DNA of 64,000 nt from Takakia lepidozioides. Lineage: Eukaryota > Plantae > Bryophyta. Below the pieces are notes generated by a model. That model searched no databases and was not told the origin of the DNA. It was given only the letters and a program-made list of their open reading frames with translations. The DNA lies in NCBI GenBank assembly GCA_030704615.1, contig CM060732.1:28582001-28646000 (forward strand). The letters run 5' to 3'. Below, piece by piece: positions 11,591-62,407 of the stretch. Position 1 is the first letter of the stretch; every line of letters begins with the position of its first letter. The position numbers were made by a program, and so were the translations under genes.

Positions 11591-11701
11591 GACTGTGTAA
11601 TCTGTATGGGCTGTGTTGGGCTGTGACAGGTTGTGTGGCACTGTGGTGGACTGTGATAGGCTGTGTCACGTTGTGATGGGCTGTGATAGGCTGTGTCACG
11701 C
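11591..11701. repeat. Internal copy of the 10-bp CTGTG array just downstream of integrase
   Basis: ctgtgttggg ctgtgacagg ttgtgtggca ctgtggtgga ctgtgatagg ctgtgtcacg, the same periodicity as the LTR array. Confidence 0.8.
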
Positions 11702-11827
11702 TTGTACTGCCCGCCCTGGTCATATACGCTCGGCTTAGCGACAAGTGCTCCATACTCCGTTGGTATCACTGGCGCAGCCCGTGACTGTTTTTGCGTTTCA
11801 ACATGCAAATCGTGCTGCAATGGTTTG

Positions 11828-14351: not shown

Positions 14352-14430
14352 TCTGTACCTTGCCTGTTTGATTGGTACTGCCCTGGTTCCAGTTCAATCT
14401 TATGCTGACAGATCTCAGGTGGTATCCCTT

Positions 14431-15426
14431 TTAGATCCTCGTAGCTCCAAGCAAATACATCTCTGTATTTGATGAACAAACTCTTAGCTTCCTCAAAGAA
14501 TTTGGCTCCAAATCAGCCCCTACCTTCACCATCCTCGGTTCCTCTTCAGTTCCCACATTCACTTCTCTCACCTGCTCATCAGCTGTGATTGTCCAACCAG
14601 TCACCACTTCATCCTGTAAACTCACAGTGGCTGGTTCCTCTAGGATTTCCATTTCTCCTTCTCTTTCTTCATAGAAATGTGGTGGGTAACTGCTTGTTTC
14701 ACCTTCAATTGGTGTTGCTGTCACTACACCACAGCAGATACCTTTTAAACAACTTAGGCCTTCCAGCTGCATCTCTGCAACCTGCTCCCACTCTGGGTGT
14801 GCAGCGAACAGGGTAGCTTCCTGCTCCTCATTCAGTCCTCCCCTCCAGTCATACTCCCTGACCCCTCGAGGTCTTCTCGTAGCAGGTAATCTACTAGATT
14901 TCTTAGTGGTAATTTGTATCTTGTGCATCCCATTATGCACAGTTAGTAACTGGGAATTCCAGTCATGGAATACCCTGGCCTGTTTCAGCCACGGACGTCC
15001 CAACAATAAGGAGTAAGCTTCCATGACTTCATCCATTTTCAATACAGTTACTGTGATCATAAAGATCATCTTAATCTGTATCTTAACTCCTCTTATCAAT
15101 CCCAATGGCTGTACACTTCTTTGATCTGCCATTGTTACTGTAAACGGGGCTGGTTTCATGTTACTTAGACCAAGCTTCTGCCTTAATTGGTCTGTCATGA
15201 TATTCACTCTAGAGCCTCCATCTATCAGTACATCAGTTAGTTCTGTGCTTCCAATTCTCAATTGGATTACTGGCATAGAATCATCAAAGTCCATGACTGT
15301 TTCTCGCCCTTCCGGCTTCACATTATAACTGGTCACCTTGCTGTTCAGGTCTGTGTTCCCTGTCACATGGGCAATTCGATTGATTGCTTGATACAGCCTG
15401 TGTCTACAATAAGGTGCCACAGCCAA
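14431..15426 (-). CDS. Gypsy aspartic protease region
   Basis: VLIDGGSRVNIM active site and YSLLLGRPWL. Confidence 0.9.
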   Translation of the reverse strand: MAVAPYCRHRLYQAINRIAHVTGNTDLNSKVTSYNVKPEGRETVMDFDDSMPVIQLRIGSTELTDVLIDGGSRVNIMTDQLRQKLGLSNMKPAPFTVTMADQRSVQPLGLIRGVKIQIKMIFMITVTVLKMDEVMEAYSLLLGRPWLKQARVFHDWNSQLLTVHNGMHKIQITTKKSSRLPATRRPRGVREYDWRGGLNEEQEATLFAAHPEWEQVAEMQLEGLSCLKGICCGVVTATPIEGETSSYPPHFYEEREGEMEILEEPATVSLQDEVVTGWTITADEQVREVNVGTEEEPRMVKVGADLEPNSLRKLRVCSSNTEMYLLGATRI

Positions 15427-15429
15427 TAG

Positions 15430-17778
15430 CTATCCAATGGTAATCTCCGCTTTGGACTGGCATATTACTTCAGCCAAAGTCCCTTCATTACTCTGCATGT
15501 CTGCAGTTTCTTTCTTCCCTTCGTCCTCACTCACTTCCTCTTCTCTTTCAGAATCAGAGGAATCTGCCATAGGAATATCAGTACTCTTCTGCATTTCCCT
15601 TATGGTATCTGCCACTTCTTTGTGCAGTTCCTTCTCATCTCTCCAACCCTCATCATCTTCAGGCACATCACTGTCATCTTCATTATCATCATCTTCCTCA
15701 TCTACTGGAGGTATTAGTTTGGCTTTGCTTCTCGTTACTATCATTGTACTTACTTCTGGTACAACACATGGCCTAACCATGTGAGCTGCCACCACTGGCC
15801 CCTCATTCACAGGAGCTCTCATCTCATTCTGGTGTCTGATCCAGAATGGACAGGCTGCCTTGCGATGGCCTGCCTGATTACAATAGTAATACAGTTCTTC
15901 CCCATTAGGTCCTCGCCCTTGGTCTGTTCTGGAATTGTTTCTGTAATCTTGATTCCCTGGCTGGTAATTCCCCCTTGGATTACCCTGATAGTTGCCTCTG
16001 GAATTTCCTTGGTAATTCCCTCTTGAATTACCTTTCCCTTCCATGCCATTGTTATAACCACCAGGCCTACCATAGTGGTCCTGATCACTGTTTCTTCTTG
16101 GCTGGGGTTGCACTTGATGCACCCTTACTTGCCTAGGTTCTCTAGCTGCTGCCCTTCTGTTGTAGTAACAATTCTCAGTAGAATGGTTATCCATTTTACA
16201 GATAGTACGGTGTTTCTCCTTCATGTGGCATTCAGTGGTGGTATGGCCTTCATTCTGGCACTTTGCACACCAAACACCCTTCCTCCAATGTGTTGCAGCC
16301 TCTGTGGCATACTTCTTCAAGATTTCTTCTAATCTTTTCTCATAGCTATCCCTCTTCAACTTCTCCTTTCTCTTACTCTTCCTTTTCAGCTCTTGCTCTT
16401 CTTCCTCATCCTCAGAGTCCTCATCATCCCTTTTCTCTCTCCTGAGCATTCCCAATTGCTCAATTCTGTTCGCTGTTTCAAATGCCTCCTCCACTGTATT
16501 ATGGGGTAACATATCCACTTTCTTGTGCAACTCTGGTCTTAGTCCACTCACAAACCAAGTCTTCTGTAAACCTTGTGCTGGTACAACAGCCAACTTTTTC
16601 ATCATCAATTCCATTTTTTCCATATACTCCTCAACAGTTTCATGCTTCTTTTGCTTTAACTGTTGTAAACTTCCATACACTTCATCCTTACTTTTACTTG
16701 TCCTGAATCTATTTCGGAATGTTGTATTCAAGCCATTCCAGGTTAGGAAATGATTATCAGGGAATCTTGCATACCATTCACTTGCTTTCTTGATAAGTGA
16801 ACAAGGAAACAATCTCATCTTGGCATCATCGCCGTTCTCATTGTTCACAATACACATGTGCTCAAATTGGCTAATGTGTACATCATGATCCCCTTTTCCT
16901 GAATATATTGGAAAAGGTGGTTTTGCCCGTGTTGGTTGTAACGCCATCTGTGGCCCTACCTTCTGCTCACTGACAGATGTTGGCCCCCTTGTTGGTGCTG
17001 GTCCTTGAGGACCTGTTGTAGTTGTGGTGGATCTTCCACCCAGTGGTGGCCCCTGAGCACTCCCTGCTACTGGCCCCACGATATTCACAGTATTCCTAGC
17101 TCCAGTTGCACTACTTCCCACACTCCCTGTCCCCCCAGAGCCAGATCCAGGCTGCCCGCCTGATCCCCCTGAGCCGACACCTTCGTTGGCCTGTGATCCA
17201 AGTGCTCCACTTGATCCAGGTCCAACGGGTTGGGATGTCCTGGTTGTAGTCTCAACCTCAGCTGTTGGGTCTACTTCTTCATACTCTTCCTCTTCCAATT
17301 TCTTCTCTCTGTTTTCATCCTCCAAGTTCTGCCCTTGGGTTTCTTCTTCACTCTTGTAACTCAACTGTAATGGTGTTGGAGAGTCTCAACTCTCCGTTGG
17401 CTTTGCCACATCCTCTCCTCCTTCTTCACCTTCCGTTTCAGAAACTGGAGTTCTTGCTTTTGGTGTTCCATGCCAACTCTTATCAAAGATTTCTGTCAAA
17501 TCTTTTATCCAGGGATGTACCTCATATCTTTCACCTCGTGGTTGATCTTCTTCCCATACCAATTCCCTTAATATTTCTTGCAAAGAAAAAGAAGGAGTGG
17601 CATCCAACTCTAGTTCTTCCGGTATGGGTGATGTACTCTCTGATCTTAATGGTGTGAGAGGTCCAGATGATTCCCCTATGTCTATTCCTCTCTCCCAAAG
17701 ATATGGATAATTAGCTTTCAGATAACTTTATCTTTTTGCTGAATATCTCTGGAGTCTAGCTTCTCTTTTGTCACTCAT
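15430..17778 (-). CDS. Gypsy gag (main ORF 15430-17364; likely original ATG at 17778 with upstream lesions)
   Basis: Retrotransposon gag core (LFPCSL..ASEWY..W..L...F, LKQKKHETVEEY) and CCHC knuckles CAKCQNEGHTTTEC and (Y)YYCNQAGHRKAAC. An in-frame TAG separates it from the protease frame. Confidence 0.9.
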
Positions 17779-18768: not shown

Positions 18769-21700
18769 CACTAGAAGCATTCGTGTCATTTACCACTGGG
18801 GTAACAACTCATTTTGAGTCGTAAAAGTCAAAAAACTGGGATCGACTGGAAGTTACAACAGACTAGTTACAACAGACGTGGTAGTTGGGTTGGACATCCA
18901 ATGATTGGAGTGGTAAAGGACGCAGACGTGCGAACAACTGCTCAGCGATTAATGCGATTAATGCTGAAGAACCACGTGGCGTAACCAGGCCGGCCGCCCG
19001 TGTGTCTGACCTTTTGGGCTGACTTTGACTTTTCCCTCCGGATGAGTGGACCGACTCACTGAAGCGTGGTGAAACATGGACGCGGACGTGGACGAGGATG
19101 TGGATGCCGACGTGGCGGCGCCACGACGAGCACCACTGCTGCCACGTGGCCACGGGCCCGGGGCGCCACGTGGTAGTGGACCACATAACTTGCAGTGCTA
19201 CATGCCCAGTGGCAATTGCGACTGCGGAAGTTGGCGCAACCACTGCCTTACTACTTTACATGAAGTGCTCGAAATTACTTGAACAATCAGTCATTCGAAA
19301 GCACCACGGGAGATGAAGGAAAAGACACCTGCAGGGACGTTGAAGCATAAAAGAGGAGAGCACTTCACTTGGGAAGAAAGTGAAGCATTGGAGAACGAGG
19401 CTGATGACTGGCAGTCTGAAAAGGAAAGGCGGTTGTGGGAAACCCTGCCAAGACCCAAGACAACCATATAGAGAGAATCAAGTAGGTGGGAACTGCCCTT
19501 CATTGGGGTGGTGCAAACAAGAGCAAGACCAGAAGCTGAACCACATGAGAAGATAGTGTGTCATCACAGATGGAGACCCTGGAAAATGCTCTGCCCAGGA
19601 GATGAAGAACATTAGGCAACTAGAAATGTGGGGGGCTGAATATGCTCTGCAGTCAACTTGGCTTGTTGAATGCTTGCATAAGAGATGAGGGGTTGTTGTC
19701 AGTACACGGCATTGAGTTCATCAAATCCTACAACAGCCCACCATCGCTGCCCACTGCTTACAAACTGCCACAAAAACAGTTCCACAGGACTTACAGATGA
19801 TTGGTGGAAGGCAAGGCCCCTCGCCATGGGCCAGATTAATTGTATGTTGCAGCCCAGAACAACAACGGGAAGTCATCTAGGGCAGCAAACCCCATGTTGG
19901 CAGCGTCTTTTGTGTGAGAGAAGTCAAGCTGAACCTGCTCATCATATCGAGTGGGATGGACCAGATGTAAAGCTGCCAAGCCAACCACACTCATATTCGC
20001 ACTCAAGCAACATAAGCTGGAGCCATTTTCAGATTATGAGTACCCGTGTTTTAAGAATACTCCTTCTTCAACTTGCGGTGAACGGGCAGAAAACTTCACA
20101 ATGTGCAGCAGATTAATGGACCAAGATGCGGAGCTGAATTGGGTATCCAGTTAGGCAATGCTGGTTTCAAAACCCCGTTCCATCCCTGCGTTTTGAAGAT
20201 CTGGCTTGAATGGGCACACTCCGGTAGTGGAAGGCTCACGGAGTAATGAGTTTGGGCTGATATGCATGCTGACATGCCATGCCGGTGCAAAGAACAACGT
20301 TCTGAGTGGCGATTGTGATCTCAAAATCTGCCCCTGCATTCAAGCTGATTTCTCTCTCGAGCAGAGCCGCCTTGTGGATGTTCCAGCCAATGTCCAAAAA
20401 CAGCTCAAGTGCAAGACAACAACATCAGCAAGGCATGGTTAGCTAAGCAAGGTAATGGTGGAGAGGCATTTGAACTCTCTGAACGTAATGTGGTCGGACT
20501 TCACCCCCTCCCACATCAACTGCTCAAGGTCTCCAAAACCTGCAATCCCCGCCCCTGTTGTGCATGTCCTGCGATCATCACTTTCCACGACACCACATTT
20601 CGCTCAGCCATATTGTTGAACACTCCCTATCTAGAAGGGTATTCATGTTCAGAATGACATCTACCACAATCCCAGCTTTGACAATGCAACCATGGACCTC
20701 TTTGCCCTTCTCCAACAGGCTCGCACATGCACTACAAACACAAACAAACGTAATGTGCTCGGGCTTCACCCCCTAGACCCACATCATTTGCTCATAGGTC
20801 TCCAAAACCCGCAATCCCCGCCCATGTTGTGCATGTCCTGCGATCATCACGTTCCACCGCACCACATTTCGCTCAGCCATATTGTTAAACACTCCTTGTC
20901 CACAAGGGAATGCTCCCACGTTTGGCATACATGTTGACAAGGTATTGTTACATCTGGTACAGTTCCAGCTTTGACAATGTCACGATGGACCTCTTTGCCC
21001 TTTACCAAGTCTCCAGGGCTGCCAGGTTTGCACATGCATTGCAAACACAAATGAACGTGACCCGGTCAGGCTGCACCTCTTCTCAACATTTGCTAATATG
21101 TCTCCAATGCCCTCATCCCGCACACATGCTGGCCATATCTTGCGAGATTCAGCGTGTTCCTTGAGACAACATCTTGTTCAGCCATGTTATCAAACTCTCC
21201 CTTCGCAACTTCATAGGTCTCCAAAGCCTCCATCCCACGTCCCTGCTGTGCATACCCTGCAAGCATCGCACTCCACGACACTACATCTCGGCAAAACAGG
21301 CTGAAATATCTCGAAGAAGAAGGTGCCCTCACCACATTGTCCTCTACCTTGTGTCATGACCCATTGCGGATTAGACTGACCATGAACCCAAGAAGACCTC
21401 TTGTGCGTGCTGCTTGTATCTCTAGTCAGGTAATGTGGGATTGGTTCGTAAGAACCACCACGGTGCAGCTGAGCGGGCAGAGATTAAAATATGGGTTGCC
21501 AAGACCAAGCTGATTCCCCCAAGAACCTTGTGATCATCAGGAAGAATACCAAATCATGGTACAAAGGGGAGCCAAGAGCCCACATTTGCACATAATGCGC
21601 CCTTGACGCCATAAACGCTTGCAACAACAAGACATGGGGCCTCGATTTGGTCTTCGTCCTTCTCGCATCACTTGTTCGTCTCTCTCTCAAGCCTCCATCC

Positions 21701-32151: not shown

Positions 32152-33317
32152 GATATTGATCTTTGCTAGGAGCTTACGTCGATCACTGGAGACCGATGCT
32201 TGCGACGGTAGTATAATATCCCACTCGCGAAGATGGCCTTACATCATACTCATGTGGTGTCTCGATGGTGCCTGCAAAGAAAGTTGCTAGTGCTGAATCC
32301 TCGGCAGTGTTGAGATGGGTAGTCCTGCAACACTGAGTATCGTGATTGATGATGCAGCGTCCTTTCTCTCCCGTCTTATTCTATACTAGGGTGTCCCTTC
32401 ACTGGAAGTTAAAGAAATTTTATCTTTATCTCCCGTCTTGCTCGGGCCTCGCGGGAGTAGGTTACTTTCTTACCCCCAAACTGGTCTGTCCTGACGTCAT
32501 TACTCGGGACCAGCCATTAATCGTTAATCGCCAGATTTCGACCTCGCCTGGGTGCCTGCCGACACAAGTAACGGAAATGAGGTTGAAAAAGCAATTAAAA
32601 AAAATCAGGGATTTTGCCAAAAGCTGATTTGATGGGCCCACCATTCGCCAGAGGGGCCGGAGGAGGGAGGCACATGTCACCATATTGAAGAGAGGCATTT
32701 TATAACGGAGGAGCCAGATCCCACCGACCACCTGTAGGACATCGCCCAATTGCGAGTAGGTGGCGTGGAGCGAGCTATGCTGTCCATTTTCCTACATATA
32801 TATATATGTAAATATACTATGTATAGACATTTACAATGTTTATTGTTGGCTTGGGGATAGAGAGTAGAGAATTCCAGAACAACAATAGAGGAAAATGCCC
32901 CTCGACTCAATGAGTAGCATCACCGCCAGGCTACGGCAATGCGTGCAGCGCCGCCTGCAAGATGGTGGAAGTGTTGGCGCTGGCAACATGAGCGACAGCA
33001 GTTCGGCCAAGGGAGGCCTACACACGACTCATATACAACCAGGCGTTTTGCAACATTGGGCCCCACACTAGTCATGAGACCTCGTTCAGCTCGTCTGTGA
33101 AGCTAAACTCCCGTCCCCATGATATTCTCCTTTCCTCTAGGGTTCGGTACTGACACAAGGATATAAGCTCACCAGAACGTGCTTTGCCGTTATCAATTCG
33201 AGAGGACACAAGGCTAGTACCAATCATAAACCGCTATAGAGCATCAAGAGAAGTTCATCCAAACACATGAGCATATCCAAGTACACTGGCAAGTTTAGCA
33301 CACAAAACATCCTTGCT

Positions 33318-35945
33318 TATGGTAGGGAGGCTCTGGAGATCTATGAGCAAATGATACTGGAAGGGGTGATACCCGACAGGGTCACGTTTACTCTGCTAAT
33401 GAAGGCACCTTCTTCAACACATTTCACCCTGTTTGGAGTGAGTTTGACATGATACTGCCAATGTGACAACAGGAAGTATGCAGAAACATGTAACAGAGAC
33501 GAGGAGAAGTTGTGGAATGAATACTTTTCTGACCTATCATTGTGGAGACAACTTGTATGCTAAATGTAAGTGTTTGACAATGTAACTCAACGAGATGTGG
33601 TCTCTTGGAAGCCATGATCACGGGATATGCTCAGCATGGGTATGGTAGGGAGGCTCTGGAGATCTATGAGCAAATGATACTGGAAGGGGTGGTACCCGAA
33701 AGGGTCACGTTTACTCTGTTAATGAAGGCACCTTCTTCAACACATTTCACCCTGTTTGGAGTGAGTTTGACATGATACTGCCAATGTGACAACAGGGAAG
33801 TATGCAGAAACAGGTAACAAAGACGAGGAGAAGCTGTGGAATGAATACTTTTATGACCCCAGTCAATGGTGGGACAATCGAGGCAAGAAGATGAATGCGT
33901 GTTCGATTACAGAGAGTAGTAGATGCAATTGAGCATAGGAACTAGTGTGATAAGTTGAGTTGGGTGTTTCCTAGCACAAATCTAGGCTGTCATTGTCAGC
34001 TGATAGTAGCAAGACAAGGGTGTATGTATGATTTGTGCAGAGGCATGGATAGCTGAAGGAGCAGGGATAGTGTGTGGGTGGACAGATTCATCCAAGAGGG
34101 CCGGACTTCAAGCTCCAGATGACCTATGATTCCATGTGGATCAATAGCTACAATAAACCTGCATGGGTAGATGGTCAACTAAAGGCAGCATTTGCAGCGG
34201 CACAGTTGATAGAATCAGGCACCTCAACCATGACCACAACTTCTGAAAGAGGATCAAGAGAGGGAGTCCACAATGCCTCTTCTGGCACTTCTGGGCATGT
34301 TTGTGTGGAAGGCAGACTGACAGATCAGGCACTGCTAGTCCAGGCATTCTTCAACACATTTCAACATGTTTTTTTCCTCTTATCAGAGTAGCAGATGCAA
34401 TTGAGCATAGAAACTAGTGTGATAAGTTGAGTTGGGTGTTTCATGGTCGGTCAATCCATGGGTCATGACACAAGGTCAAGGACAATGTGGTGAGGGCACC
34501 TTCTTCTTCGACCTATTTCACCCTGTTTTTCCATCTCATCAAGCACCTCAACCATGACCACAGCTTCTGGAAGAGGATCAAGAGAGGGAGTCCAGGGAGG
34601 CTTTGGAGACCTATGAGCAAATGATGGGGGAAGGGGTGAAGCCCAACCACATCACGTTCCTTTGCATTTGCAATGCGTGTGCAAGCCGGGGAGCCCTGGA
34701 AAAGGGCAAAGAGGTCCATGATGACATCGTCAAAGCTGGAATTGTACCAGATGTCATTGTGAACACTACCCTGGTGGACATGTATGCCAAATGTGGGTGC
34801 ATTAAGGATGCAAAGGCAGTTTTGAAAGTTCAACAATATGCAGGCTGAACGAGATGTGGTGTCCTGGAGCGCGATGCTTGCAGGGTATGCACAGCAGGGA
34901 GGGGGGGGTGGAGGCTTTGGAGACCTATGAGTAAATGATGGGGGAAGGGGTGAAGCCCAACCACATCACGTTTGTGTGCGTTTGCAATGCATGCGCAAGC
35001 CTGGCAGCTCTGGAAAGGCAAAGAGGCCCATGGCGACATGGTCAGGGCTGGAATTGTACCCGATGTCATTCTGAACAATGCCCTCATGGACATATATGCC
35101 AAATGTGGGAGCATTGAGGATGTGAAGGCAGTGTTCAACAATATGGCTGAATGAAATGTGGTGTCGTGGACCGCGATGCTTGCAGGGTATGCACAGCAGG
35201 AGTGCGGGACGGAGGCTTTGGAGACCTATGAGCAAATGATGGAAAAAGGGGTGAAGCCCGACCACATCACATCTGTGGGTTTGCAAGCCTGGCAGCCCTG
35301 GAGAAGGGCAAAGAGGTGCAAGGTGACATCGTCAAAGCTGGAATTGTACCAGATGTCATTGTGAACACTACCCTGGTGGACATGTATGCCAAATGTGGGT
35401 GCATTAAGGATGCAAAGGGAGTTTTCAACACTAGGCTGAACGAAATGTGGTGTCATTGAAGACGATGCTTGCAGGGTATCCACAGCAGGGACGCGGTATG
35501 GGGGCTTTGGAGACCTATGATCAGATGATGGGGGAAGGGGTGAAGCCCAACCACATCACGTTTCCATGCATTAGCAATGCGTGTGCAAGCCTGGCAGCTC
35601 TGGAAAAAGGCAAAGAGGTCCATGGCGACATGGTCAGAGCTGCAGTTGTACCAAATGTCATTCTGAACAATACCCTCGTGGACATGTATGAAGGGAGTGT
35701 TCGACAGTATGGCTGAATGAGATGTGGTGTCGTGGAATGCGATGATTGCAGGATATGCACAGCAAGGGTGCGGGATGGAGGCTTTGGAGACCTATGAGCA
35801 AATGATGTGCGAAGGGGGTGAAGCCGGGGTGAAGCCCCACTACATGACGTTTGTTTGCATGCAATGCGCGTGCAAGCCTGGCAGCCTTTGAAAACAGCCT
35901 TTGAAAAAGTGCAAAGAGGTCCATGGTGACATTATCAAATCTGGA
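33318..35945 (+). pseudogene. Scrambled mosaic of PLS-PPR repeats and OSB-type PDF-motif exons
   Basis: EKLWNEYFYDPSQWWDNRGKK (33828-33890) and IHPRGPDFKLQMTYDSMWINSYNKPAWV (from 34086). About four degenerate PLS triplets at 34590-35945. Internal duplications. Confidence 0.85.
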
Positions 35946-39367: not shown

Positions 39368-40239
39368 CTATGCCTGAGCTGTTGCTGTTTGGGTCCCCAG
39401 AGGGAATGGCCCCACTACAATTGCCTTTTCAGGATTTGAGAGATCCCCACAACCAGCATGCTGAACAAACTCTGCAGGTGACATGTGGCAGCCATGGCAT
39501 GCACATACGATTCTGACCTGGCCTTTGTCAACCCTGTAAAGAACACCACATATAGTCTTCCCGTTGGGTCCCACACCAGTACAAGTAACCCATGGCAGAT
39601 CTGGTAATGAGCCCGTGCCGCCAAAAGTTTGTCCAGCAGCAACTCCTGGCCGCAAGCTGGAAGCTTCTTGACCAGCGAGGCCTTCAAAATTTGGCAGGGA
39701 CCCCTGCCGCCAGACACCACCATGATAGCCCTTGGATTCCTCATCCAATGAGGAAAAACTTCGAACTCCTGTGAGATCTGATTGAGCTGAATCAGCAGGA
39801 GTGCCTGGTTGGCCAGATCCACCAACACCCATCTCATCTGGTGTACTTGGAGAAACCCGAGAAGCAGACCGTTCCACCTGAGACACCACCACCCCTGCTC
39901 CCTGAGATGCAGGGCCCTTCACAGGACCGTTTGTGACCATTGGACTAGCCAGTGTATAGGCCCCCCCTGGTGGAGTATCGACCAGGCTTGCAAAGGCACT
40001 CCCATTCGAGCCCTCTCTTCTCAGAAGCCGTTCCCCTGCATCTGACTTAGTGCGGGAGGGCCCGAACTGTGGGGCAGGGGGTACTGCATGCGGGGCATTT
40101 GAGGTTGACGAGGGTTGTAGTCTTGCAAATGCACCGCTACCCATAGAACCAGCCCTTAGCAGTGGGTGCATACCAGAGGTGGACGAATCACGGGCTGGAG
40201 ATGTACTCCGGCTATGGGTATGCTCATTGCCTTTAGCAC
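39368..40239 (-). CDS. NINJA/AFP-family co-repressor, exon 2 (C-terminal TIFY/ABI5-binding domain)
   Basis: LPWVTCTGVGPNGKTICGVLY...VRIVCACHGCHMSPAEFVQHAG. Acceptor cag|GT, phase 1. Confidence 0.88.
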
Positions 40240-41339
40240 CTGCCATCCCCAAATGATACTTCGATAAGCAGTTGTAAAGACTCAGGTGATCCCTACCTCT
40301 GCTTGAAGCTTTGAGCAGCTCATCACATTCATGCAAAGAAGAGAAGGGATATCCCCATGAAGGCAAAGAGGCAAAAGCTGGGCAGACAGTGGCTTAGGAG
40401 GATCTTGATAATGCAGATCGTACCACCATCAGAAATTTGTCCACCAGTGTGTACTCCACAGTGGAGGACAGAGATAAATTGATCAAATTGAGATCAATAG
40501 ACCTAAAGGAGAAACTCCGGAATCTCACCAAACTGTCTTGGAGACCACCCAATCCGTCCCCATAGGTAGGCTTCCCAGATCTAGTTGCAGTTATTCTAAT
40601 GCCCACATAGAAGCTTTCAGAACTAGACATCAACAATGTCCCAGGTGGATCAATCCTCCTGCATGAAACCAGGTTAGGTTTGAGGTGGGATATCATGTCC
40701 CCTTGAACCTCACAACTCATATATCTCGACTATGTGCAACAACTTGACACCGACTTCACAGATCCCCAGTAGGTCGAGTGTCTCTATGACGAAGATCAGA
40801 CACATTCAGTTCTGGCCCCCTCTATGTGTGATGTGCTCTCTCAAGTTATCTACAAAAAAAATACATTCACTAAGATTTCAGAGTTCTATATTTTTAATAG
40901 AACAGCTTCACCTCTAAGCAAGAGACCCCTAGTCCACATGTACCCTGCAGCACAGCTGTTCATCTGGTCTACCTCCTCAGGTCCTTTTCCATTCTAACAG
41001 ACATTTGGGTTAGTCAACGCTCTGCATATTCAGTGTGAACCGCGATAGAGAATCACAGAAAACCAAAGAGGTTCCATGCTTTCTCTCCATATGCTACAGT
41101 GCACTGGATTGCAGTCCATAAAGGATATGGAGGGAGAAGGAAAGGTTTGTTGTGGAAGCCTTGCAAACAGAGAGGAGACAATAAACTCACAGGTAAAAGA
41201 GGGTAATGTACAGACTAACAAGGGCAGTTCCTGTAAGATAGACAAGTAGGAGAGAAGCCATCCTAATAAGCAAAGCAAAGTGTCAAAGACAAAATGCCAA
41301 CTGCCAAGTTCAATTGGTAATTCTGGACGGTCCACGTAC

Positions 41340-43878
41340 CTTGAGAATTGCGGTTGTCATCATCATGAGTCATCCCTGACTGAGTTCTCTTCAGCCCAGA
41401 AGATCCATTCCGAGGAGGTGAATGAGGGGGTGTAGGTTGGGGCCGCAAGACTGCCGGCGCCCATGCTGCAGGCCCTTCGTGGGTCTGGAGTTGGAAGGGA
41501 GAATAACCTGCAGGTACAGAGATTTGGAAAGGATTTGGCATGTTAGGGGTCGGCCGCTGTTCTTGATTCCCCTCTCCCCCAGGGGCTGGGGCAGGTGCAA
41601 ACTGCATTAAATATGGGAATGGAAATGGGACACTGAACGGTACCCCCCCTGCAGCAGCTGCTGCTGGGACAGATATAGGGAAAGGGTAAGGAACATGCAT
41701 GAGAGGAAATGCAGGATTGGGAGGGTATGTCATGCCCCCAATTGCACTACTGGCAGGTGGGACTGGGCCACTTGTCAGGCTACAGTTACTAGTCCGGTTG
41801 CATCCCTCCGCACCACCACCACTGTTCATTGGTCTGCTGGACGGAGTCTCCCCTTCTCTGACTTCAAACCTTGTACCATTGTTACTGTGTTTTTCATCCT
41901 TTTGATCAGAATTTTCACTACCAACTGAGTCACTTTGACTTGGAGGCTTTGTTCTCTCACCCCCTCTCTCTGGCTCCAGCCTGGACGATGGTTTCTCTGT
42001 CCCAGCATCCCCACCCCTCCGCTGTTGCCCATTGTTCGAATTGGGTTGTCCTTTCACCACACCCTCTCTACTACTCTCCATAAGAGCAGCTGCAACTTGA
42101 TACGCAGTTGCATTATTCATTTGCATCTCAAATACCTTCTGGATCCATGCTGGGTCCATTTGAGTGCGGGAAAAATCCATATGATTGACACCTGGAGGAC
42201 CCAGCCCCTCATTTCTATTTTGAAGATATGCCAGCTCAGGAACACCGCCTCTACAAGAATCGTCCCCTGATGAATCCACACCGGCAGCACCATCTGACTC
42301 CCGACCTCTGTCCTTGGTAGCCCTATCTCTCTCTCGCTGCAAAGCCCGACGGATTTCAAGCAACTGCTCACCCTCCTCATTATTTTGGTCAACCCCCACA
42401 GCCATGGGCTTGTCTCCTTTCTCATCCAAAGAAGCTGGAGCAGGCCCAGATGCCTGGGGGATTGCATCCCAATTGTGTGCCCATGTGCTGCTGCCAGGCC
42501 TCCGAAAGGCTGCAAGACTCATGGCGCCACCTGCCTCTTGGCTATCAGGTGGGGAAGAGACTGAAGAGATGGACCCCTCCTTTGCCTGAAGTGGGGGAGA
42601 GGGGGGTAGAGATGAATTTGTTCGTCTCAACTGGTTTGGTGGGGTGCCTGGGCGGGTCTTTCCAGTGGTCACTCCCGGAGGACCGGATGGCCCTGGCTTA
42701 TCATCTTCTTTCTTTGACTTTTTCAATTGTTTTTGTCCTTCCAGAAGCAACTTCCTCTTCTTTCGTGCCTCCTGCCGTTTCTGAGTTTGCATCTCCCTCT
42801 TTCTCTGCTGCTCCATCATATCCTGCTGCTGGATTATGATTTGCCGCTGCTGCTGGTCAACTGCCGAACCCTTCCCTGCATCAGGGTCATTTCGCAGATC
42901 CACCCCATGAGGCATATCGGCACTGGCTGGCGTCACACCTTGCTGAGCAGGAGCAGGTGCGGCCTCAGTATGTTTCCCAGCTGAAAGAGAGTTCATGGAT
43001 TGGGCAGTCTGCAAAACTACCCCCCGCGCCATCGGATCCATGCCATCCTTAAAAGCCTCCAACAACTGCAAGGGTATGGCACCTTGCGCAGCAATGCGTG
43101 CCCATGCAGCAGCAGTTGCCACAGCCTGTGGAGGAAGCCCCTGAAGTTCCTTGATCAAACTGGCCTCATCTTGCACACTCAAAGGCAATCTTTGATGTTC
43201 TGGCTGAGCTGCCTTTTCTTGCAATGCCTGCCAGATACTCTGCGCAAAAATCTTGGAGTCCTCTGCTACTGAATTTTCAGCTGGGCGCCAAGGGCCCTCG
43301 GATAAGGATCCTGGGTGGGGTGGGGCTGCGCTGCGGGAAGGGAAGGGCCCTGACAAACCCTTCTCCCTCCCTTCAGGTGCAGTCCTCCCAAACTCTTGCC
43401 AAAAAGCTTGAACTCTGCCACCCTTCTGTTCACCATTGATGGACACACCAGCATCAAGGAAAGCGCCCTTGGCAGAGGTCTCCATTGACCCACCACCCTC
43501 CCTATTCTTCTCGGTGTTCTTGTCTGCATGTTGGTCCCGGAAGCTGTCTTTGATCCTGAAACCATCTCTGTCCGTGTATGCCTCCTTCTCCTTATCCTTG
43601 GCTTTTGGTTTGCTGCTTTTTGTCCCTCCTAATGAAAGCCCCAGACTAAGCTCTAGCCCACTGTCGTCCTCTGCATCGAAATCTGGAGTCTGTCTGTGCT
43701 CTTTGGTGTCACTACTCTCTGAACATATCTGGGATTGCCCCTCTTGGGCGTCGTCGGTATTGCCAGGTTGATCAGCTTTCAGGCACCAGCGATGTAAGGT
43801 GGGTGGCGGACCCCATCCTCCCTCGGACTTGGGCTCAGCGTGGGAAGCCCCGAAGTGGTCTTCCTGGTTGCCCCCCAT
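41340..43878 (-). CDS. NINJA/AFP-family co-repressor, exon 1
   Basis: EAR motif LELSLGLSLGG and domain B RKREMQTQKRQEARKKRK. Donor CAAG|GTACGT. Joined CDS is 3,411 nt (1,136 aa). Confidence 0.88.
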
Positions 43879-54295: not shown

Positions 54296-55737
54296 TAATA
54301 TTTTATACCAATCCTTCACCTATATACCATAACAATACTAGTGAGCACCTCCTTATATAGCCTTGGGAGGTGGCGGGCCTTCCCCAGCCAGGCGGTGGTG
54401 GAGCCCTCCAGAAGACCCCACATGTGTCCTACCACACACTATTTGACACGTGTCTAGTAATTGCTCCCCCCAAAAACTCTAATGTGAGCCCACCATTGGC
54501 TGTTCCAATGGTGCGCCTATTATTTAACCTTTCATAAATAAAACATTGTGTCCCCCCTCGTTCTAGGTGTCCCCCCGGCCCAGACCCACCGGTCCATTCA
54601 TGAAGCCCCACTCATCTGCCTGTCCTTCCCCTCCTTTTCCACCCGCCCCTCCACTTGGTCATGCCATCTTCTTACTGGCTGAATTTTCTTGAAATGAAAC
54701 TTGGGCTACATATTACATATTAAATTGAATTAATACAATAAAAGATTGAAGGGGTGGACAGGGTTGTGATTTGTGACCACTTTGCAGTGCCCTTTTACTG
54801 GGATCTCTGATTTTGAGCCTTGTTGTGTTATTTACGCATTCTCTGCTCCCTTGTTTGGGGTGCTTGTTTGGTTTCCATTTATGAGGTTTCTGCAACACTG
54901 TGGATGCCTTATGGTTTCACCTAAGGTTTTAGTTTTTCCTTCCTAATAATCCCAAATAAAGTTCACTGTCAGGGCAACGCGGGCCCTTCCTTCCAACCAA
55001 AAAAGAAAGTAAAATTTGCATCCAATAGCCAATTACTAATTTTTTTCTCTCAATGTACCCGAGCATATCTGACATATATTTCCCAAATGTTTCAATACTT
55101 GTTTTAATTGACCGTGGCAAAGGATCCCAATGAAGTGGGGATGGAAGTCATCAAACTTCTTAAAATCTTAGTCTCATTTAACTTTGGCAAGGTCTCATTG
55201 CACCCACAAGCCACTCTCTCTTCAATGGCATCCATCAGGACTTCCATTTGTGGGAACTGGCCAAAAAGTTTGGAACCATCAAGGAAACGTTTGTAATTGT
55301 GGGTACTGGGTCCAGCCTGCATACCCACAGTAGCTCTACGTGTTTTGGGAGTTTGAGAAGGGCACAATGGCGCAGGAGCTTTGTTTGCAGCATCAGTTCA
55401 AATCTAATCGGCCCAAGGCTTCTATCCATAGCTGAGAGTCAACTTGCTTCTTCAACGACTTTGTTCTCTCTTTTACTTTTCTCCTCTCACAAGACCTCGA
55501 TGTGCAAATTTAAGTGGGATCTATCCAAGTGTCTTGCAGTGAGACAAGGAGAAACTATGTGGGGGTTGAGGCAAGTCCTGACAATGGATGAAAATCAGAC
55601 ATGACAACACCTTCGCACAATTTGTCGCGCACTTTCCTTTTTCACATGCATCATGCTTTCCTTGTCCCATAAGCTCTTTGAGCTTCCAGTGTTCATTATA
55701 AAGTTTCTTTCTCCCCTTCTTTCACCTGTGTTTCTTT

Positions 55738-58278
55738 TCACCAGTAATCCCCACAAGAACAAAGCCCATCTTGGAAGTGATGAAACCGGTTGGCATCTCG
55801 TAAAACAATTGCTCGCCCAACAATCTTTGAGATGAACTTGGTCGCCGTGTGACAATCACCACAAACCCGAAGGTTCTTGATGACCTGGAGAGGCATCCCA
55901 GAGTGTGTGCTAATGAGGCCAAAAGCAATGGCCAGTTTCTCACTGTGGTGGCAAAGAGAAATTTCCTTTTGGTCTTCCTCCACATCATGCAATACAAAGC
56001 TCGTATCAGGCACATATCCAGCCTCCTTCATCTGTCCAGACAATCTCCTCAGCTCAACATGGATTTCCTCAATTCGTGGATGCCATTTGTCTTCTACGAC
56101 AAATGTATGCACCTGGTTGTTCACCTCAATGCAGCTGCGCCCTGGCTCCTTTCTGACACCTCTGCCTTCCATCATCTGCCTCACCTTTGCTTGGTCATCC
56201 CACCTGCCAGCAGCAGCATAGATGTTGGAAAGCAGCACATAAGTTGGAGCGTCTTTTTTATCCCACTTGAGAATGCACGTTGCTGCACGTTCTGCTAGCT
56301 CTACATTACAATGGATTCTGCAGGCACCAAGCAAGGCCTTCCACACTCCAGCACCTGGTTCAATTGGAATTTTGTAAATGAAGGCCTCTGCCTCATAGAC
56401 TAGTCCTGCACGACCAAGAAGGTCCACCATGCAGCCAAAATGCTCCAGAGTAGGAGTGAGGGCATGTTCTTGACTCATAGAATTGAAGTAATGAAAGCCT
56501 TCATCCACTAGACCCACATGGCGACATGCGCTGAGAACTGATACAAATGTGATACCATTTGGCTTCAAGCCTTCCTGCTGCATTTTTTCAAACAGTTGCA
56601 GAGCCTCCCTACCTAACCCATGCTGAGCATATCCTGTGATCATGGCACTCCATGAGACAACATTTTGGTGTGCCATATTGTCGAACACTCTACATGCATC
56701 CTTCATGCTCCCACATTTGGCATACATGTCCACCAGAGCAGTCTCCAGAATGACATCTTGTGCAAGTCCGGCGTTGAAGATGTCCGCATGGACCTCTTTG
56801 CCCTTTTCCAGGGCTGCCAGGTCAGCACACGCATGTAGAACACAAATGAATGTGACCTTGTTTGGCATCACCCCTTCTGGTAACATTTGCTTATAAATCT
56901 CAAAAGCCTCCCTACCAAACCCATGCTGAGCATATCCTGCCACGATCGCACTCCAGGAGACTACGTTTCGCTGTTCCATACTGTCAAATATTTGACGGGC
57001 ATCCTTCAAGCTCCCGCATTTGGCATACATGTCAACAAGGGCCGTCTCCAAAATAACATCTTGCTCAATCCCAGCTTTCATCAGATCTGCATGGACCTCT
57101 TTGCCTTTTTCCAGGCTTGCCAGGCTGGCACATGCATTGAGAACGGAAATGAATGTGACTTTGTCAGGGGTCACCCCCTCCACTATCATTTGCTCATAGA
57201 CCTTGAAAGCCTCCCTACCACCCCCATGCTGGGCATACCCCACAATCATCACATTCCATGAGACCACATTTCTTTTAGTCATATCGTCGAATACCAGACG
57301 GGCATCCTCCATGCTCCCACATTTCGCGTACATGTCAGCAAGGGCAGTCTCCAGAATAAAATCAGGTGCAATTCCAGCATTCATGATGTCAGCATGGACC
57401 TGTTGGCCCTTTCCCAGGGCTGCCGTGCTAGCACACGCATCGAGAATGCAAACATATGTAACTTGATTGGGCATCACCCCTTCTTGCATCATTTGCTTAT
57501 AGGCCTCAAAAGCTTCCCTAACACACCCATGCTGAGCATATCCTGCAATCATCACACTCCATGAGACCACATCTCGATTAGCCATATTGTCAAACAGTTG
57601 GCGTGCATCCCTTATGCTTCCGCATTTGGCATACATGTCGACAAGGGTATTCTCCAGAATGATATCTGACACAATTCCAGCTTTGATAATGTCAGTATGA
57701 ACCTTTACGCCCTTCTCCAGGGCTGCCTGGCTGACACATGCCTTGAGAACACATATGAATGTAACCCTGTCCGGTGTCACCCCTTCCCCAATCATTTGCC
57801 CGTACATCTCCAAGGCCTCCTTACCATACCCATGCTTGGCATACCCTGCTATCATTATATTCCACGAGAACCTATCTCGCTTAGGAATCCCGTCAAACAC
57901 TTGGCGGGCATCTACCACACTCCCGCACTTGGCATACATATTGACAAGGGCATTGAGTAGGAAGATGGTTGGCTTGCATCCAGTTTGGATTATGTGTGCA
58001 TGCACCTTCTTTCCCTCTATTAGGCTTCGTATGTTGATGCACTCCTGCAAGAGACAGACATACGTTTTGGAGTCTGCTGAAATGCCTTGCTGGTTTAAAA
58101 CGTGCAGGGCTTCTGTCAACTGTCCTGCCATACATAGAGTGCTGATATTACCACATTCTGCTTGAGCTTGTCTCGTGGAAGCTAGCTTATCTTTCACCCA
58201 AGGAGGGTTTGACCAACCTTCGATCCAAAGGGCATCCTTTGTCCACTTATGTCGGAAGTCTGGTAATCTTGGACTTCT
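55738..58278 (-). CDS. PLS-class PPR protein with E1/E2/DYW deaminase domain (C-to-U organellar RNA editing factor type); exon begins with the second half of a PDF motif
   Basis: Uninterrupted frame RSPRLPDFRHK...WVKDKL, about five PLS triplets, E domains, PG box KEPGRSCIEV, HSEKLA...CGDCH and terminal DYW. Acceptor cacag|AGA at 58278. Confidence 0.92.
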   Translation of the reverse strand, partial: RSPRLPDFRHKWTKDALWIEGWSNPPWVKDKLASTRQAQAECGNISTLCMAGQLTEALHVLNQQGISADSKTYVCLLQECINIRSLIEGKKVHAHIIQTGCKPTIFLLNALVNMYAKCGSVVDARQVFDGIPKRDRFSWNIMIAGYAKHGYGKEALEMYGQMIGEGVTPDRVTFICVLKACVSQAALEKGVKVHTDIIKAGIVSDIILENTLVDMYAKCGSIRDARQLFDNMANRDVVSWSVMIAGYAQHGCVREAFEAYKQMMQEGVMPNQVTYVCILDACASTAALGKGQQVHADIMNAGIAPDFILETALADMYAKCGSMEDARLVFDDMTKRNVVSWNVMIVGYAQHGGGREAFKVYEQMIVEGVTPDKVTFISVLNACASLASLEKGKEVHADLMKAGIEQDVILETALVDMYAKCGSLKDARQIFDSMEQRNVVSWSAIVAGYAQHGFGREAFEIYKQMLPEGVMPNKVTFICVLHACADLAALEKGKEVHADIFNAGLAQDVILETALVDMYAKCGSMKDACRVFDNMAHQNVVSWSAMITGYAQHGLGREALQLFEKMQQEGLKPNGITFVSVLSACRHVGLVDEGFHYFNSMSQEHALTPTLEHFGCMVDLLGRAGLVYEAEAFIYKIPIEPGAGVWKALLGACRIHCNVELAERAATCILKWDKKDAPTYVLLSNIYAAAGRWDDQAKVRQMMEGRGVRKEPGRSCIEVNNQVHTFVVEDKWHPRIEEIHVELRRLSGQMKEAGYVPDTSFVLHDVEEDQKEISLCHHSEKLAIAFGLISTHSGMPLQVIKNLRVCGDCHTATKFISKIVGRAIVLRDANRFHHFQDGLCSCGDYW

Positions 58279-58571
58279 CTGTGAAACCCACTACTGGGCA
58301 GCTGAGCTCAATTGCTTGAATGACGGACTCACATAACCAAGCTACAACCACCTAAGCTCCAATCATTTTTAAAATACCTGCGACTAACCTTGAGGAACTT
58401 GTATGCCCTGCTAACAAGGAAAAACAAACTACTGATTGTAAAGTATTACCACTATTTGCTATTTTTTCCAGTCACTACTGTAAGCTTCTGGAGATAGAAG
58501 CCACTCAATATCATTCTGTCACAAGCCCTACTTGGCAAACTCTGTCAGGCCCTAAACCAAAGTAGCCTCAC

Positions 58572-58630
58572 CTTATCAACTTATCCCACCAAAGCTAAGG
58601 ATCTGAGAAGAATTCCTGCCAGAGCTGATC
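58572..58630 (-). pseudogene. Upstream exon remnant with the first half of the PDF motif, disabled
   Basis: DQLWQEFFSDP*LWWD followed by a GTGAGG donor. TAG at 58595-58597 and an apparent small deletion. Confidence 0.7.
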
Positions 58631-59744
58631 TTGGCACAATGTTTGGCCTGCATGCTAAGACCACTTAAACATAGAGGTGATGTCAGGGTTGGTGAAGACG
58701 TTTTGGGACTGAAATTTTCCAAACTGGGGGTACTTCAAGTTCACAGCTCATTGGTTCTCTTAACTCCAAATAAAAATCACAGGCAATCATGAAATTTGCA
58801 GCGACTAAGAGAAAAATGTAAAGATTTACATCTATTACTTGGGAATGCATATTTTACTATCACATACATAATGGGCTACATATGCTCAGTTGCAGTTAAG
58901 GAAGAATATCAGAAATTTCCACTGGGTATTATTATTCACATGCTTGCTGGCTGCAAGGAGAGCTGTAATCCTGAGAGAGAGAGGGAGAGAGAGCGAGAGA
59001 GAGATAACCAGACTTCAGCTTTTCTGTCTGCTGTCCGGCTATGGTGTGCTTCGTATATGTGGATGTTTATCAGTTATTTTAATCCTGTGCTACATGACAC
59101 AGTGAGCAACATTTGATGCGACCTTTCTCTCACACCCAGTACAATCTTCAGTGCCCTGGTCGTGGGCTCTCAAACCCTTAAAAGGTCAGAGGTCAAGTTC
59201 CTGCAAAATGAAGTACAGAGAGAACCGCTGGTTGCCACGTGAAACCAGAGAAACCTTAAGATCATTCCAGGATTGGCCAATTTTCTCTGTTCTTCGGGAT
59301 GTTTTAACGAGATCAGCCTGATAGTAGGGCCCGCGGAAGAGGGTCGTATCTACACGAGAATACCGATAGGAAGGTGAAGCACCTGAGCGTGGCCATTGGT
59401 GGGGCTAACATCAACCTCGTGTTTCGTCTTAGCCCCAAACAGCAGGTCCAGCCCACCTCTACACACAAACAAGTACCCACAATTTTGTCAGATTGAGAGA
59501 CACCAGTACCAGCGCCAGAACAAGAGCGCCAGAAGACAGAAAACTTCACTTGGACTTAGCTCAAACAATCACTCGAGGAGGGTAAAAGAGAGTAAAGAGA
59601 CAAACCGAAATTCCAAAGTCAGCTGCATCTCTTCCAGCTCCCCCTTCTCCCTCCTCTGCCGGCTCTTGTGAGGACTGCGCCTGGAATCGTCAGAAGACGA
59701 TGCCTTCCCTCTACCAATCTCCACTGACAACCCACAAAATCCGC

Positions 59745-59975
59745 AGCTGAGCATATCCCGTGATCATGGCGTTCCAAGAGACCACATCTTGTTGAGTTAC
59801 ATTGTCAAACACTTTGCGCGCTTCTACATTTAGCATGCGAGCTGTCTCCAGAATGATATCTGACCCAATTCTAGCTTTGATGATGTTAGCATGTACCTCT
59901 GTGCCCTTCTCAAGAGCTTGGAGGCTCTCACACGCACGAAGAACGCAGAAAAATACCCTCTTGTTTGAGGTGAGC
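59745..59975 (-). pseudogene. Isolated degenerate PPR (L-S-P) fragment
   Basis: CVLRACESLQALEKGTEVHANIIKARIGSDIILETA..RKVFDNVTQQDVVSWNAMITGYAQ. Confidence 0.8.
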
Positions 59976-60569
59976 CCTTGGTGTGCTGAATCACCTCCTT
60001 GGTTCACAATGCGCAGCGCCCCTTCAGGCCATTCAAGAAAGCTTCGGGTCAAGAAAGGTTCTGGGTTTTCGGGCAGGTCCGACGAAAATTGATGACGACG
60101 AAACGTGGCGACGATGACGTGGCACTATGGCACCCTATTCCTGCTCTACGCTAAACTAGCTTCCGACCTTCGGTCATCGCTAGAATCTGGTACAGTAGAT
60201 AGAGCAAGTTCATGCAGGGAGGCACCGCCGAATTACTTAAAATCTCTTCGTTGCAGTGTCGTAAAATCTAGAAATTTCCTTAAGTTGCGCCGAAGTATTT
60301 TGTTGTAAAGAAAATAAATATTCGGCACTTCACTGCCGGATCAGCCTTCCCACTACCGTAAACTCAAATAGAGATTTTTTGAATGTTGTGGTGGACTGGA
60401 TGAAAAAGTTCCTTATAAATGAAAAAAGTGGCAGCAGAGGAGGACGAAAAGGTGGTTGCGGAGAGGGATGAAACAACAAAAAAGTGGCATAAGTACTAAA
60501 TATTGGATGTTTTATGCATAGTTTCATTTATTTTTGGACAGAGACACGTGTCGCAATGGATGATGAAAT

Positions 60570-61925
60570 GTACCCGATGTCATTCTGAACACTGCCCTGG
60601 TGGACATGTATGTCAAATGTGGGTGCATCGAGGATGCAAATGGAGTGTTTGACAGTATAGCTGAACGAGATGTGGTGTCGTGGAGTGTGATGATTGCAAG
60701 ATATGCACAGCAAGGGTGCGGGATGGAGGCTTTGGAGACCTATGAGCAAATGATGTGCGAAGGGGTGAAAACCAACCACATCACATTTGTTTGTGCTTGC
60801 AATGCGTGTGCAAGCCTGGGAGCTCTGGAAAAGGGGAAAGAGGTCTATGGTGACATCGTCAAAGCTAGAATTGTACCTGATGTCATCCTGAACACTGCCC
60901 TGGTGGATATGTATGCCAAATGTGGGTGCATTAAGGATGCAAAGGGAGTTAATTTCAACACCATGGCTGAACGAGATGTGGTGTCATGGAACACGACGCT
61001 TGTAGGGGTATGCACAGTAGGGGCGTGGGATGGAGGCTTTGGAGACCTATGAGCAAATGATGGGGGAAGGGGTGGAGCCACATCACGTTTGTGTGCGTTT
61101 GCAGTTCGTGTGCAAGCCTGGTAGCCCTGGAAAAGGGCAAAGAGGTGCATGGTTGCATCACCAAAGCTGGAATTGTACCAGATGTAATTCTGAACAATAC
61201 CCTCGTGGACATGTGTGCCAAATGTGGGTGCATCAAGGATGCGGAGGGAGTGTTCAACAATATGGCTGAACGAGATTTGGTATCATGGAATGTCATGCTT
61301 GTAGGATATGCACAGCAGGGGCGCGGGATGGAGGCCGTGGAGACCTATGAGCAAATGATGGGTAAGGGGTGAAGTCCGACCACATCACGTTTGTGTGCGT
61401 TTGCAATGCTTGTGCAAGCCTGGCAGCCTTGGAAAAGGGCAAAGGGTGCATGGTGACATCATCAAAGCTGAAATTGTACCAAATGTCATTCTGGACACTG
61501 CCCTGGTGGACATGTATGTGAAATGTGGGTGCATTGAGGATGCAAAGGGAGTATTTGACAATGTGGCTGAATGAAATGTGGTGTCGTGGAATCCGATGAT
61601 CGCAGGATATGCCCAGCATGGTTGTCATGCATGCAGCCACACTGGCCTACTGAATGAAGGAAGACGCTACTTCAATTCCCTGAGTCAACATCATGGTGTC
61701 ACCCTGCTAGTAAAGCACTTTGGCTGCATGGTAGCCTTCTGGACGTGCGGGACAACTACATGAGGCAGGGTACCTGATTAATAAAATGCGAATCAGTCCA
61801 GATGTTGTGGTGTGGAAGCCTTGCTTGGTGCCTGCAGAATCCATGGCAATGTGGAGATGGCTGAATGTGTGGCAACATCTATCCTCAAGTGGGATGAACA
61901 GGATGCCGCGACTTATGTGTTGCTA
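60570..61925 (+). pseudogene. PLS-E PPR pseudogene, truncated in E2
   Basis: Three to four frameshifted PLS triplets, then ACSHTGLLNEG, HFGCMV, LLGACRIHGNVEMAE and ATYVLL. The sequence breaks off there with no DYW. Confidence 0.88.
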
Positions 61926-62407
61926 TAATTCTGGGTTTGGGTGGTGGAGCTTCTCCAAAGCTTGAAGATAGAAGTGAATACGAATTTTAATGAGCTTGAT
62001 GAGAGGGGCAGTCCTATGCACAAGTTTGTTCAGCATCTTAAATTTGGACATGTTTGTTTGTTTCTCATGGTGAGGCTTTGGATGGAGCCCTTGACGAATT
62101 TGCATGAATATTGTCAAAAGCTAGCCTTAATTCACCAAGATCCAATCCCACGGTGGATGCTTGAAAGTTCATATAGTGAATGTAAGGGTATTTGGGTATG
62201 TTGTTACTGATTGATAGGCTTGCGAAAATTGAACATTGAAATGCAGATCCGCCATTTTTCTTCCAGAAAAAACAAAACACGGGATCTCTCCATGTAACAA
62301 CGTGGGGATGACCAACCCCTTTTTTTGTGAAAAATTGAACTTAGTTCGCAGAATTCGTCGCTAGTATTGCGAAGCAACGCGAAGCCCTAGTGTGATAAAA
62401 GAATTAT

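Follow-up and report, generated by a model that had tools for sequence, protein, structure and literature searches.

The 64,000-nucleotide stretch of Takakia lepidozioides DNA analysed here (contig CM060732.1; "the window" in what follows) contains at 55738-58630, on the minus strand, a gene for a pentatricopeptide repeat (PPR) protein of the PLS class with a C-terminal DYW deaminase, preceded by the PDF motif of OSB proteins, which are organellar proteins that bind single-stranded DNA. We propose to place this locus in a large family of PPR proteins, organellar and of the PLS class, that seedless land plants possess; many members would be PPR-E-DYW editing factors, and the family carries one to three N-terminal PDF domains otherwise known from OSB proteins. 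In intact members the PDF domain would most likely clamp single-stranded nucleic acid regardless of its sequence and so keep the editor at single-stranded DNA (ssDNA) of the nucleoid or at nascent RNA. Meanwhile the PPR array would locate the target site and the DYW domain would deaminate the cytidine. The focal copy itself we take for a decayed member. In our opinion the account as a whole (the PDF-PPR family, the OSB-derived module, the clamp role and the decay of the focal copy) is quite probable.

The focal gene and its domains

The minus-strand frame is open from 58290 to 55741, an intact run of 850 codons with its stop codon at 55740-55738 in the list of open reading frames (ORFs). Searched against Pfam, its translation gives, in this order, a PLS-type PPR array at 56311-58131 (at least ten repeats; PPR families from 1e-49 to 1e-91, with PPR_2 at 1.4e-91 and PPR at 1.7e-81) and, together at 55741-56313, an E motif (E_motif 7.4e-20), an E+ motif (Eplus 1.1e-3) and a full-length DYW cytidine deaminase (DYW_deaminase, aligned over positions 1-93 of 93 with 6.8e-44). 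In the translation one can read HSE, CGDCH and, at the very end, DYW. Such an order, a PLS array and then E, E+ and a DYW deaminase bearing zinc-binding signatures, marks a PLS-class PPR-DYW protein, and the preliminary description, made from the sequence alone, was right to place the gene there.

All of this lies in exon 2 (55738-58278, delimited by the ORF list and Pfam), which starts past a cag acceptor (58281-58279) and reads RSPRLPDFRHK...ALW...NPPWV. These first codons (58180-58278) are the C-terminal half of a PDF motif, with the PDF triplet, HK, LW and NPPWV, and they share the frame of the PPR array; exon 2 has its first ATG in this frame only at 58131-58129. A 293-nt GT..AG intron (58279-58571), recognised from the sequence, from the positions of homologous introns and from contig depth, interrupts the motif. 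Its first half lies upstream in a decayed exon 1 (58572-58624), where LWQEFFSDP*LWWD can be read at 58624-58583 in another frame and the donor AAG|GTGAG stands at 58572|58571. Both peptide strings are thus where the preliminary description had placed them. Pfam finds no SSB-like OB fold (PF00436) in the focal ORF: the locus carries the OSB motif, but it is not an OSB gene.

Homology of the motif to the OSB PDF motif

The PDF motif, named for Pro-Asp-Phe, has about 50 residues and in OSB proteins follows the OB fold on its C-terminal side (PMC6963530, PMC4166229). In AtOSB1 the motif suffices for ssDNA binding; such binding is known for AtOSB1 and AtOSB2 only (PMC6963530, PMC4166229).

We built a profile hidden Markov model (HMM) of 55 positions solely from OSB sequences, namely 56 PDF motifs from 45 OSB-type proteins, and ran it against the 3666 stop-to-stop six-frame fragments of the window. 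The focal ORF matches positions 22-54 of this profile with 41.9-45 bits and E=1.5e-11, which is, on this profile evidence, far beyond chance. The decayed exon-1 piece, recognised also from its sequence and from a DNA alignment, matches positions 2-12 at E=0.039. The pieces were searched singly, as stop-to-stop fragments. Independent of the focal gene, the three-motif region of a Diphasiastrum PPR protein (P0062:125-375), compared with 5.8 billion sequences, matches named OSB1, OSB2 and OSB3 proteins at E values from 1e-17 to 1e-24, and most of the proteins so matched carry PF00436. Reciprocal searches with OSB and PPR-linked PDF motifs give 60-89 bits per motif, and an alignment of 13 PPR-linked with 12 OSB motifs has 12 invariant columns. 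By these comparisons, and by the intron position discussed below, the PPR-linked and OSB PDF motifs are truly homologous, and the earlier identification of the motif holds.

Some searches were of little help here. Pfam has no model for the PDF motif; two Pfam matches to pieces of it, zf-Paramyx-P (1.1e-3) and HphA_C (0.035), were below threshold and were rejected as noise. A word-index search with the first 60 residues of the focal ORF gave no match, which is uninformative given that too few exact 5-mers are common with annotated proteins.

Intron position and origin of the fusion

The strongest argument for common descent is, in our opinion, the gene structure. A phase-0 intron splits the PDF motif five codons past WWD and five codons ahead of the PDF triplet, and this position is common to the OSB genes of Marchantia polymorpha and Trema orientale, to a Sphagnum jensenii PDF-PPR gene and to two copies in the window, the focal gene (copy A) and copy B. 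The Marchantia OSB gene and the focal copy have even the donor AAG|GTGAG in common, and the layout of the focal gene agrees, together with the intron position, with that of Sphagnum P0054 (L003) and of copy B. Because the PDF unit of the PPR family consists of two exons with a phase-0 intron at the OSB codon boundary, we argue that it came as genomic DNA from an OSB-type gene. As far as exon structure can tell, this shows descent from such a gene and not convergence. We define the PDF-PPR family by a PLS array that has on its N-terminal side, in the same gene, one to three PDF motifs with the OSB-type phase-0 intron; the focal gene belongs to this family as a decayed member.

A tree of 156 motifs speaks to the number of fusions. 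The PPR-linked motifs cluster (6 label changes, against a mean of 40 after shuffling), and when PPR-linked and SSB-linked motifs are considered alone there are 2 label changes. A single PPR-linked clade is not rejected by the approximately unbiased (AU) test (p=0.19). The tree allows one ancient fusion, then, without proving it. A PDF-PPR gene of Adiantum capillus-veneris (P0105) is intronless, being 3009 nt long for a protein of 1002 residues, and in this differs from the moss gene and from the window copies; this would fit a spread by retroposition in ferns.

Distribution of the architecture

Further members were sought among the 120 nearest PPR homologues of the focal ORF. The best of them are 50-57% identical to it, those from the lycophyte Diphasiastrum complanatum coming first. 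In 28 of the 120 the N-terminus bears one to three clean copies of a motif with the pattern LWQEFFSDPSQWWDNR..K..PDFKHK..LW..NPPWV. The OSB-only HMM finds PDF matches in 30, with 61-87 bits per full motif, and 11 of these 30 end in DYW. The carriers comprise 23 of the 32 Diphasiastrum proteins, two named Sphagnum proteins, two unnamed JGI entries and three fern proteins (two from Adiantum, one from Ceratopteris), two of the three fern matches being weak and partial (11-16 bits). None of the 52 seed-plant proteins in this sample, from Cryptomeria, Ginkgo and Pinus, has the motif.

On this sequence survey the PDF-PLS-(E-DYW) arrangement is a family trait, old and widespread in seedless plants. 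The preliminary description had likewise taken it for a family trait, and it had staked the idea on a significant PDF profile match and on an intact copy elsewhere; the first is found at E=1.5e-11 and the second in the intact homologues of other species.

A wider search with the PDF profile, against 1.84 billion cluster representatives, returned 1367 proteins at E<=1e-3, of which 666 reach E<=1e-10. Since the list is ordered by summed score, it favours proteins with many motifs; its best 150 entries comprise 79 SSB-type proteins, 65 proteins or fragments with PDF motifs only and 6 PPR proteins, the last confirmed with Pfam. Two of the representatives, P0240 and P0241, are little else than strings of PDF motifs (13 over 1160 aa and 11 over 908 aa, respectively), far above the maximum of five in a 2026 survey of OSB genes, and Pfam returns no family for either. 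Another protein, P0272 (1526 aa), combines three PDF motifs with an SSB-like region and a kinesin motor domain; it is probably a fusion of two adjacent genes by the gene model.

Predicted structure of the PDF module

Structures were modelled for an intact Diphasiastrum member, not for the focal copy. AlphaFold2 predicts the PDF motif alone, from an alignment of 140 sequences, with a mean predicted local distance difference test (pLDDT) score of 92; the predicted fold has a helix (residues 2-10), two strands (15-17 and 30-32) and a second helix (48-56). In a model of the first 400 residues of the PDF-PPR-DYW protein the PDF part scores 85-90 and the PPR array above 90, and the linker between them (residues 59-79) falls below 50. 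The PDF module thus looks like an independent compact domain on a disordered tether, about 20 residues long, ahead of the PPR solenoid, as far as such models can be trusted.

The fold has no credible relative in the PDB (Foldseek E>5; VIA-align Z<=2.5). In the ESM Atlas the model superposes with TM scores of 0.87-0.91 on one cluster of SSB proteins and three PPR/DYW clusters of Streptophyta; a feature search of the same resource with residues 1-60 of the Diphasiastrum protein P0102 gave no usable match. Two clusters of hypothetical Uroviricota phage proteins (about 190 aa) also superpose on it, with TM 0.65-0.73 over 56 residues. This likeness could reflect a distant structural relationship, but a fold of such small size could also match by chance.

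Other PDF-PPR copies in the window

Five fragments of the window are matched by the OSB-only HMM, and beyond them all matches have E>1. Besides the two pieces of the focal gene they are the two halves of copy B and a faint relic, copy C. The plus-strand fragment 33771-33929 (E=2.6e-9, positions 2-24) contains the first half of the copy B motif at 33828-33896, as seen in the sequence, with a donor that has AT instead of GT; the second half, in the plus-strand ORF 34071-34388 (E=2.3e-7, positions 24-54), lies at 34089-34184. PPR repeats follow as far as about 36 kb, broken up by stops and frameshifts. Copy B also contains a tandem duplication of about 340 bp (33267-33775, plus strand), in which the same PPR fragment with an intron-like tail occurs twice (ORFs 33267-33452 and 33605-33775), followed each time by a PDF first half. 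The duplicate first half, at 33504-33545 on the plus strand, is the more decayed one; an HMM built from PPR-linked motifs detects it at E=0.004 and the OSB-only HMM at E=1.4, and it is also seen in the alignment.

Copy C, on the minus strand at 21349-21396, preserves the end of a PDF motif (W...NPQWV) and is matched at E=0.17 by the OSB-only HMM (positions 38-52) and at E=0.022 by the PPR-derived one. It lies 5' of fragmented PPR repeats at 20.4-21.3 kb. The preliminary description counted three loci with the motif in this window. The focal gene and copy B are well supported by the profile, whereas the third is a weak relic. All three loci are damaged, and only the focal one has kept a long frame.

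The remainder of the window is of less concern here. Further fragmented PLS-type PPR repeats and a broken piece of an E motif lie at 59700-62000 on both strands, head-to-head with the focal gene, and no PDF remnant was detected there. Long minus-strand ORFs at 7534-17364 resemble, by eye in translation, the gag, protease, reverse transcriptase and integrase of a long terminal repeat (LTR) retrotransposon of the Ty3/gypsy type. Two more at 39368-43878 (minus strand; 332 and 871 aa), of low complexity and rich in Pro, Ser and Gly, with a C-terminal block rich in Cys and His, resemble an ordinary nuclear gene.

Decay of the first PDF exon

A DNA-level alignment sets the first exon of the focal gene beside copy B and the OSB genes of Marchantia and Trema. 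Where the aligned sequences have a sense codon the focal copy has TAG (58597-58595). Moreover, four nucleotides are deleted next to 58581/58580, between GATAA and GTTGATAAG|GT. The deletion takes out the conserved N-R, and exon 1 now ends in phase 2 while exon 2 begins in phase 0; by eye, the canonical junction leads from the exon-1 frame into exon 2 out of frame and soon to a stop. The sole nearby ATG (58653-58651) is out of frame with exon 1, and no start codon stands in frame 5' of the PPR array in either the decayed exon 1 or exon 2, an upstream exon being possible.

Of the residues invariant in the motif, the second half has all (PDF, HK, LW and PPW). The first half has kept W, WW and D, and has lost through the deletion the R and K that follow WWD, and the TAG takes the place of the residue ahead of them. 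A complete motif of about 50 residues in one frame is absent from the focal copy, while homologues of other species have it. Because of the stop, the deletion and the want of an in-frame ATG, the focal copy is unable to encode a whole PDF domain. Here we have to disagree with the preliminary description, which let the two pieces spell the motif jointly, with WWDNR in the first. No single frame contains both, the focal copy reads WWDKLI, and an intact fusion is not encoded at this locus.

Evidence for expression was taken from two small public runs, from two studies of the same organism, which are guessed to be RNA and are available as contigs only. Exact contigs cover the 3' untranslated region (55400-55762) and parts of the focal ORF. 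One of them, record 7, matches 58036-58278 exactly and then has 85 letters that do not continue into the intron. Contig depth is about 5 in run X1 and 0 in run X2 in the bin that is wholly intron, versus about 100 and 3.5 in the exon-1 bins. No differing letter or indel is listed between 57925 and 59101 for the contigs of either run. Altogether the contigs fit transcription, use of the ancestral acceptor and a genuine stop and deletion, though they are not proof. Thousands of other contigs, at 90-95% identity, point to a very large PPR family in the source organism.

Given that the PPR-E-DYW frame is intact, and that the gene is apparently transcribed and spliced at the ancestral acceptor, we read the focal copy as a recently disabled or 5'-remodelled member of the PDF-PPR family.

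Alternative explanations and the role of the PDF module

Several points weigh against our account. The 850-codon open frame argues that the focal gene may still work via another start. Both public runs are only guessed to be RNA, consist of contigs instead of reads and may contain DNA, and the 85 letters of record 7 may come from elsewhere than the decayed exon. The tree with a possible single origin is based on 56 columns. We found no experiment on any PDF-PPR protein, so the role given to the PDF domain in the PPR context is an inference. Finally, OSB proteins favour ssDNA over double-stranded DNA or RNA (PMC4166229), a preference that is no obvious match for an RNA editor.

The main alternative for the focal locus follows from the first of these points. 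The gene could be a working editing factor that has dispensed with its PDF domain, starting either in an upstream exon spliced to 58278 or at the ATG at 58131, with the PDF remnant surviving as leader sequence or as an N-terminal relic. Such a gene would have what is seen here, an intact frame with complete E, E+ and DYW parts behind an acceptor at 58278 that is apparently used, and 9 of the 32 listed Diphasiastrum homologues do without a PDF motif as well. It would, however, need a beginning that exon 2 does not offer, there being neither a presequence nor an in-frame ATG 5' of the PPR array; a start at 58131 would give no organelle-targeting peptide and would have several ATGs ahead of it, and the two other PDF-PPR copies of the window are plainly dead. 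We consider this possibility a serious one, although it is less probable than a disabled or remodelled copy.

As to the intact members, a more specific proposal than a clamp can be made, which we put forward tentatively. PDF-PPR-DYW proteins would be editing factors coupled to the nucleoid, with the PDF module on displaced ssDNA of transcription bubbles and R-loops or on nascent RNA, so that editing would be co-transcriptional and the module would be, in seedless plants, an in-cis counterpart of the MORF- and ORRM-type helpers that act in trans in seed plants. A bolder version is that the tether may expose ssDNA to the DYW deaminase. Moss editing factors act largely alone, a single protein being sufficient for editing in mosses (PMC9459714).

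The main alternative for the family, somewhat less likely still in our judgement, is that the PDF module of PPR proteins does not bind nucleic acid at all and serves in oligomerisation, in contact with partners such as OSBs and other nucleoid proteins, or in sorting within the organelle. AtOSB2 is indeed a tetramer (PMC6963530), the model places the module on a flexible tether away from the RNA-binding surface, and no solved structural relative points to a binding mode. On the other side, the residues that do not vary among OSB proteins, in which the motif is enough to bind ssDNA, do not vary in the PPR copies either, and from this we argue that PPR-linked and OSB PDF motifs would have the same biochemical activity.

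The stop and the 4-nt deletion might also be assembly errors or a strain polymorphism in a gene that codes for an intact PDF-PPR-DYW protein, as the otherwise intact state of the gene could suggest. We regard this as very improbable: contigs from two runs and two studies span the exon-1 bins without a listed difference, and three separate defects (TAG, deletion and missing ATG) within 80 nt would be a strange set of errors. That the resemblance to the OSB motif is due to chance or convergence, which the shortness of the motif (about 55 residues) and its splitting in two at the focal locus might invite one to think, is refuted for practical purposes by the profile E value of 1.5e-11, the reciprocal scores and the identical position and phase of the intron.

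Relation to known systems

The nearest relatives of the module are the OSB proteins themselves (OSB1-4 in Arabidopsis; Zaegel et al. 2006, as cited in PMC6963530, PMC4166229 and PMC13393729), which have the same PDF domain. The likeness extends to the 12 invariant columns, to scores of 60-89 bits per motif, to the predicted fold (TM 0.91) and to the phase-0 intron inside the motif, and in both cases nuclear genes encode organelle proteins. In OSB proteins, however, the PDF motif lies C-terminal to an SSB-like OB fold (PF00436) and the role is in organellar DNA recombination, whereas in the focal family it is N-terminal to a PLS-type PPR array with a DYW deaminase, with no OB fold.

In its other parts the focal protein resembles PLS-E-DYW RNA-editing factors such as Physcomitrium PPR56 and PPR65 (PMC10482289, PMC6397227, PMC9459714), with PLS repeats, the E1/E2 motifs (E and E+) and a DYW domain with HxE and CxxC; what sets the PDF-PPR family apart from these is the one to three PDF modules before the array. 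An overview of Physcomitrium PPR proteins names RRM, LAGLIDADG, SMR, NYN, CBS and SAP as extra domains, PDF not being among them (PMC9459714). PPR-RRM proteins (PpPPR_3/AtPPR4), PPR-SMR proteins and the helpers that act in trans in seed-plant editosomes, MORF/RIP and ORRM, follow the same logic, in which a specific PPR reader is combined with a less specific accessory module. Unlike these, the PDF module is plant-specific, is known for ssDNA and not for RNA, is attached in cis and, among the 120 homologues, is confined to seedless plants.

The preliminary description did not know the fusion as a characterised family, and we agree: no paper that links the PDF motif with PPR proteins was found in the searchable literature, which included neither Gutmann et al. 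2020 nor Zaegel et al. 2006. PPR is not mentioned anywhere in a 2026 survey that covers 182 OSB genes. That the PDF motif has no Pfam model is probably why the fusion was overlooked.

Implications

With its PDF motif broken, the focal locus contributes less than an intact copy could, yet it puts on record the intron-bearing gene structure and how the PDF-PPR family turns over by birth and death. [quoted passage not shown] For engineered editors the PDF-PPR fusion would supply a ready-made accessory binding module, and for the plants themselves a fusion that is ancient, conserved and expanded would give a handle on where and when editing takes place in seedless plants.

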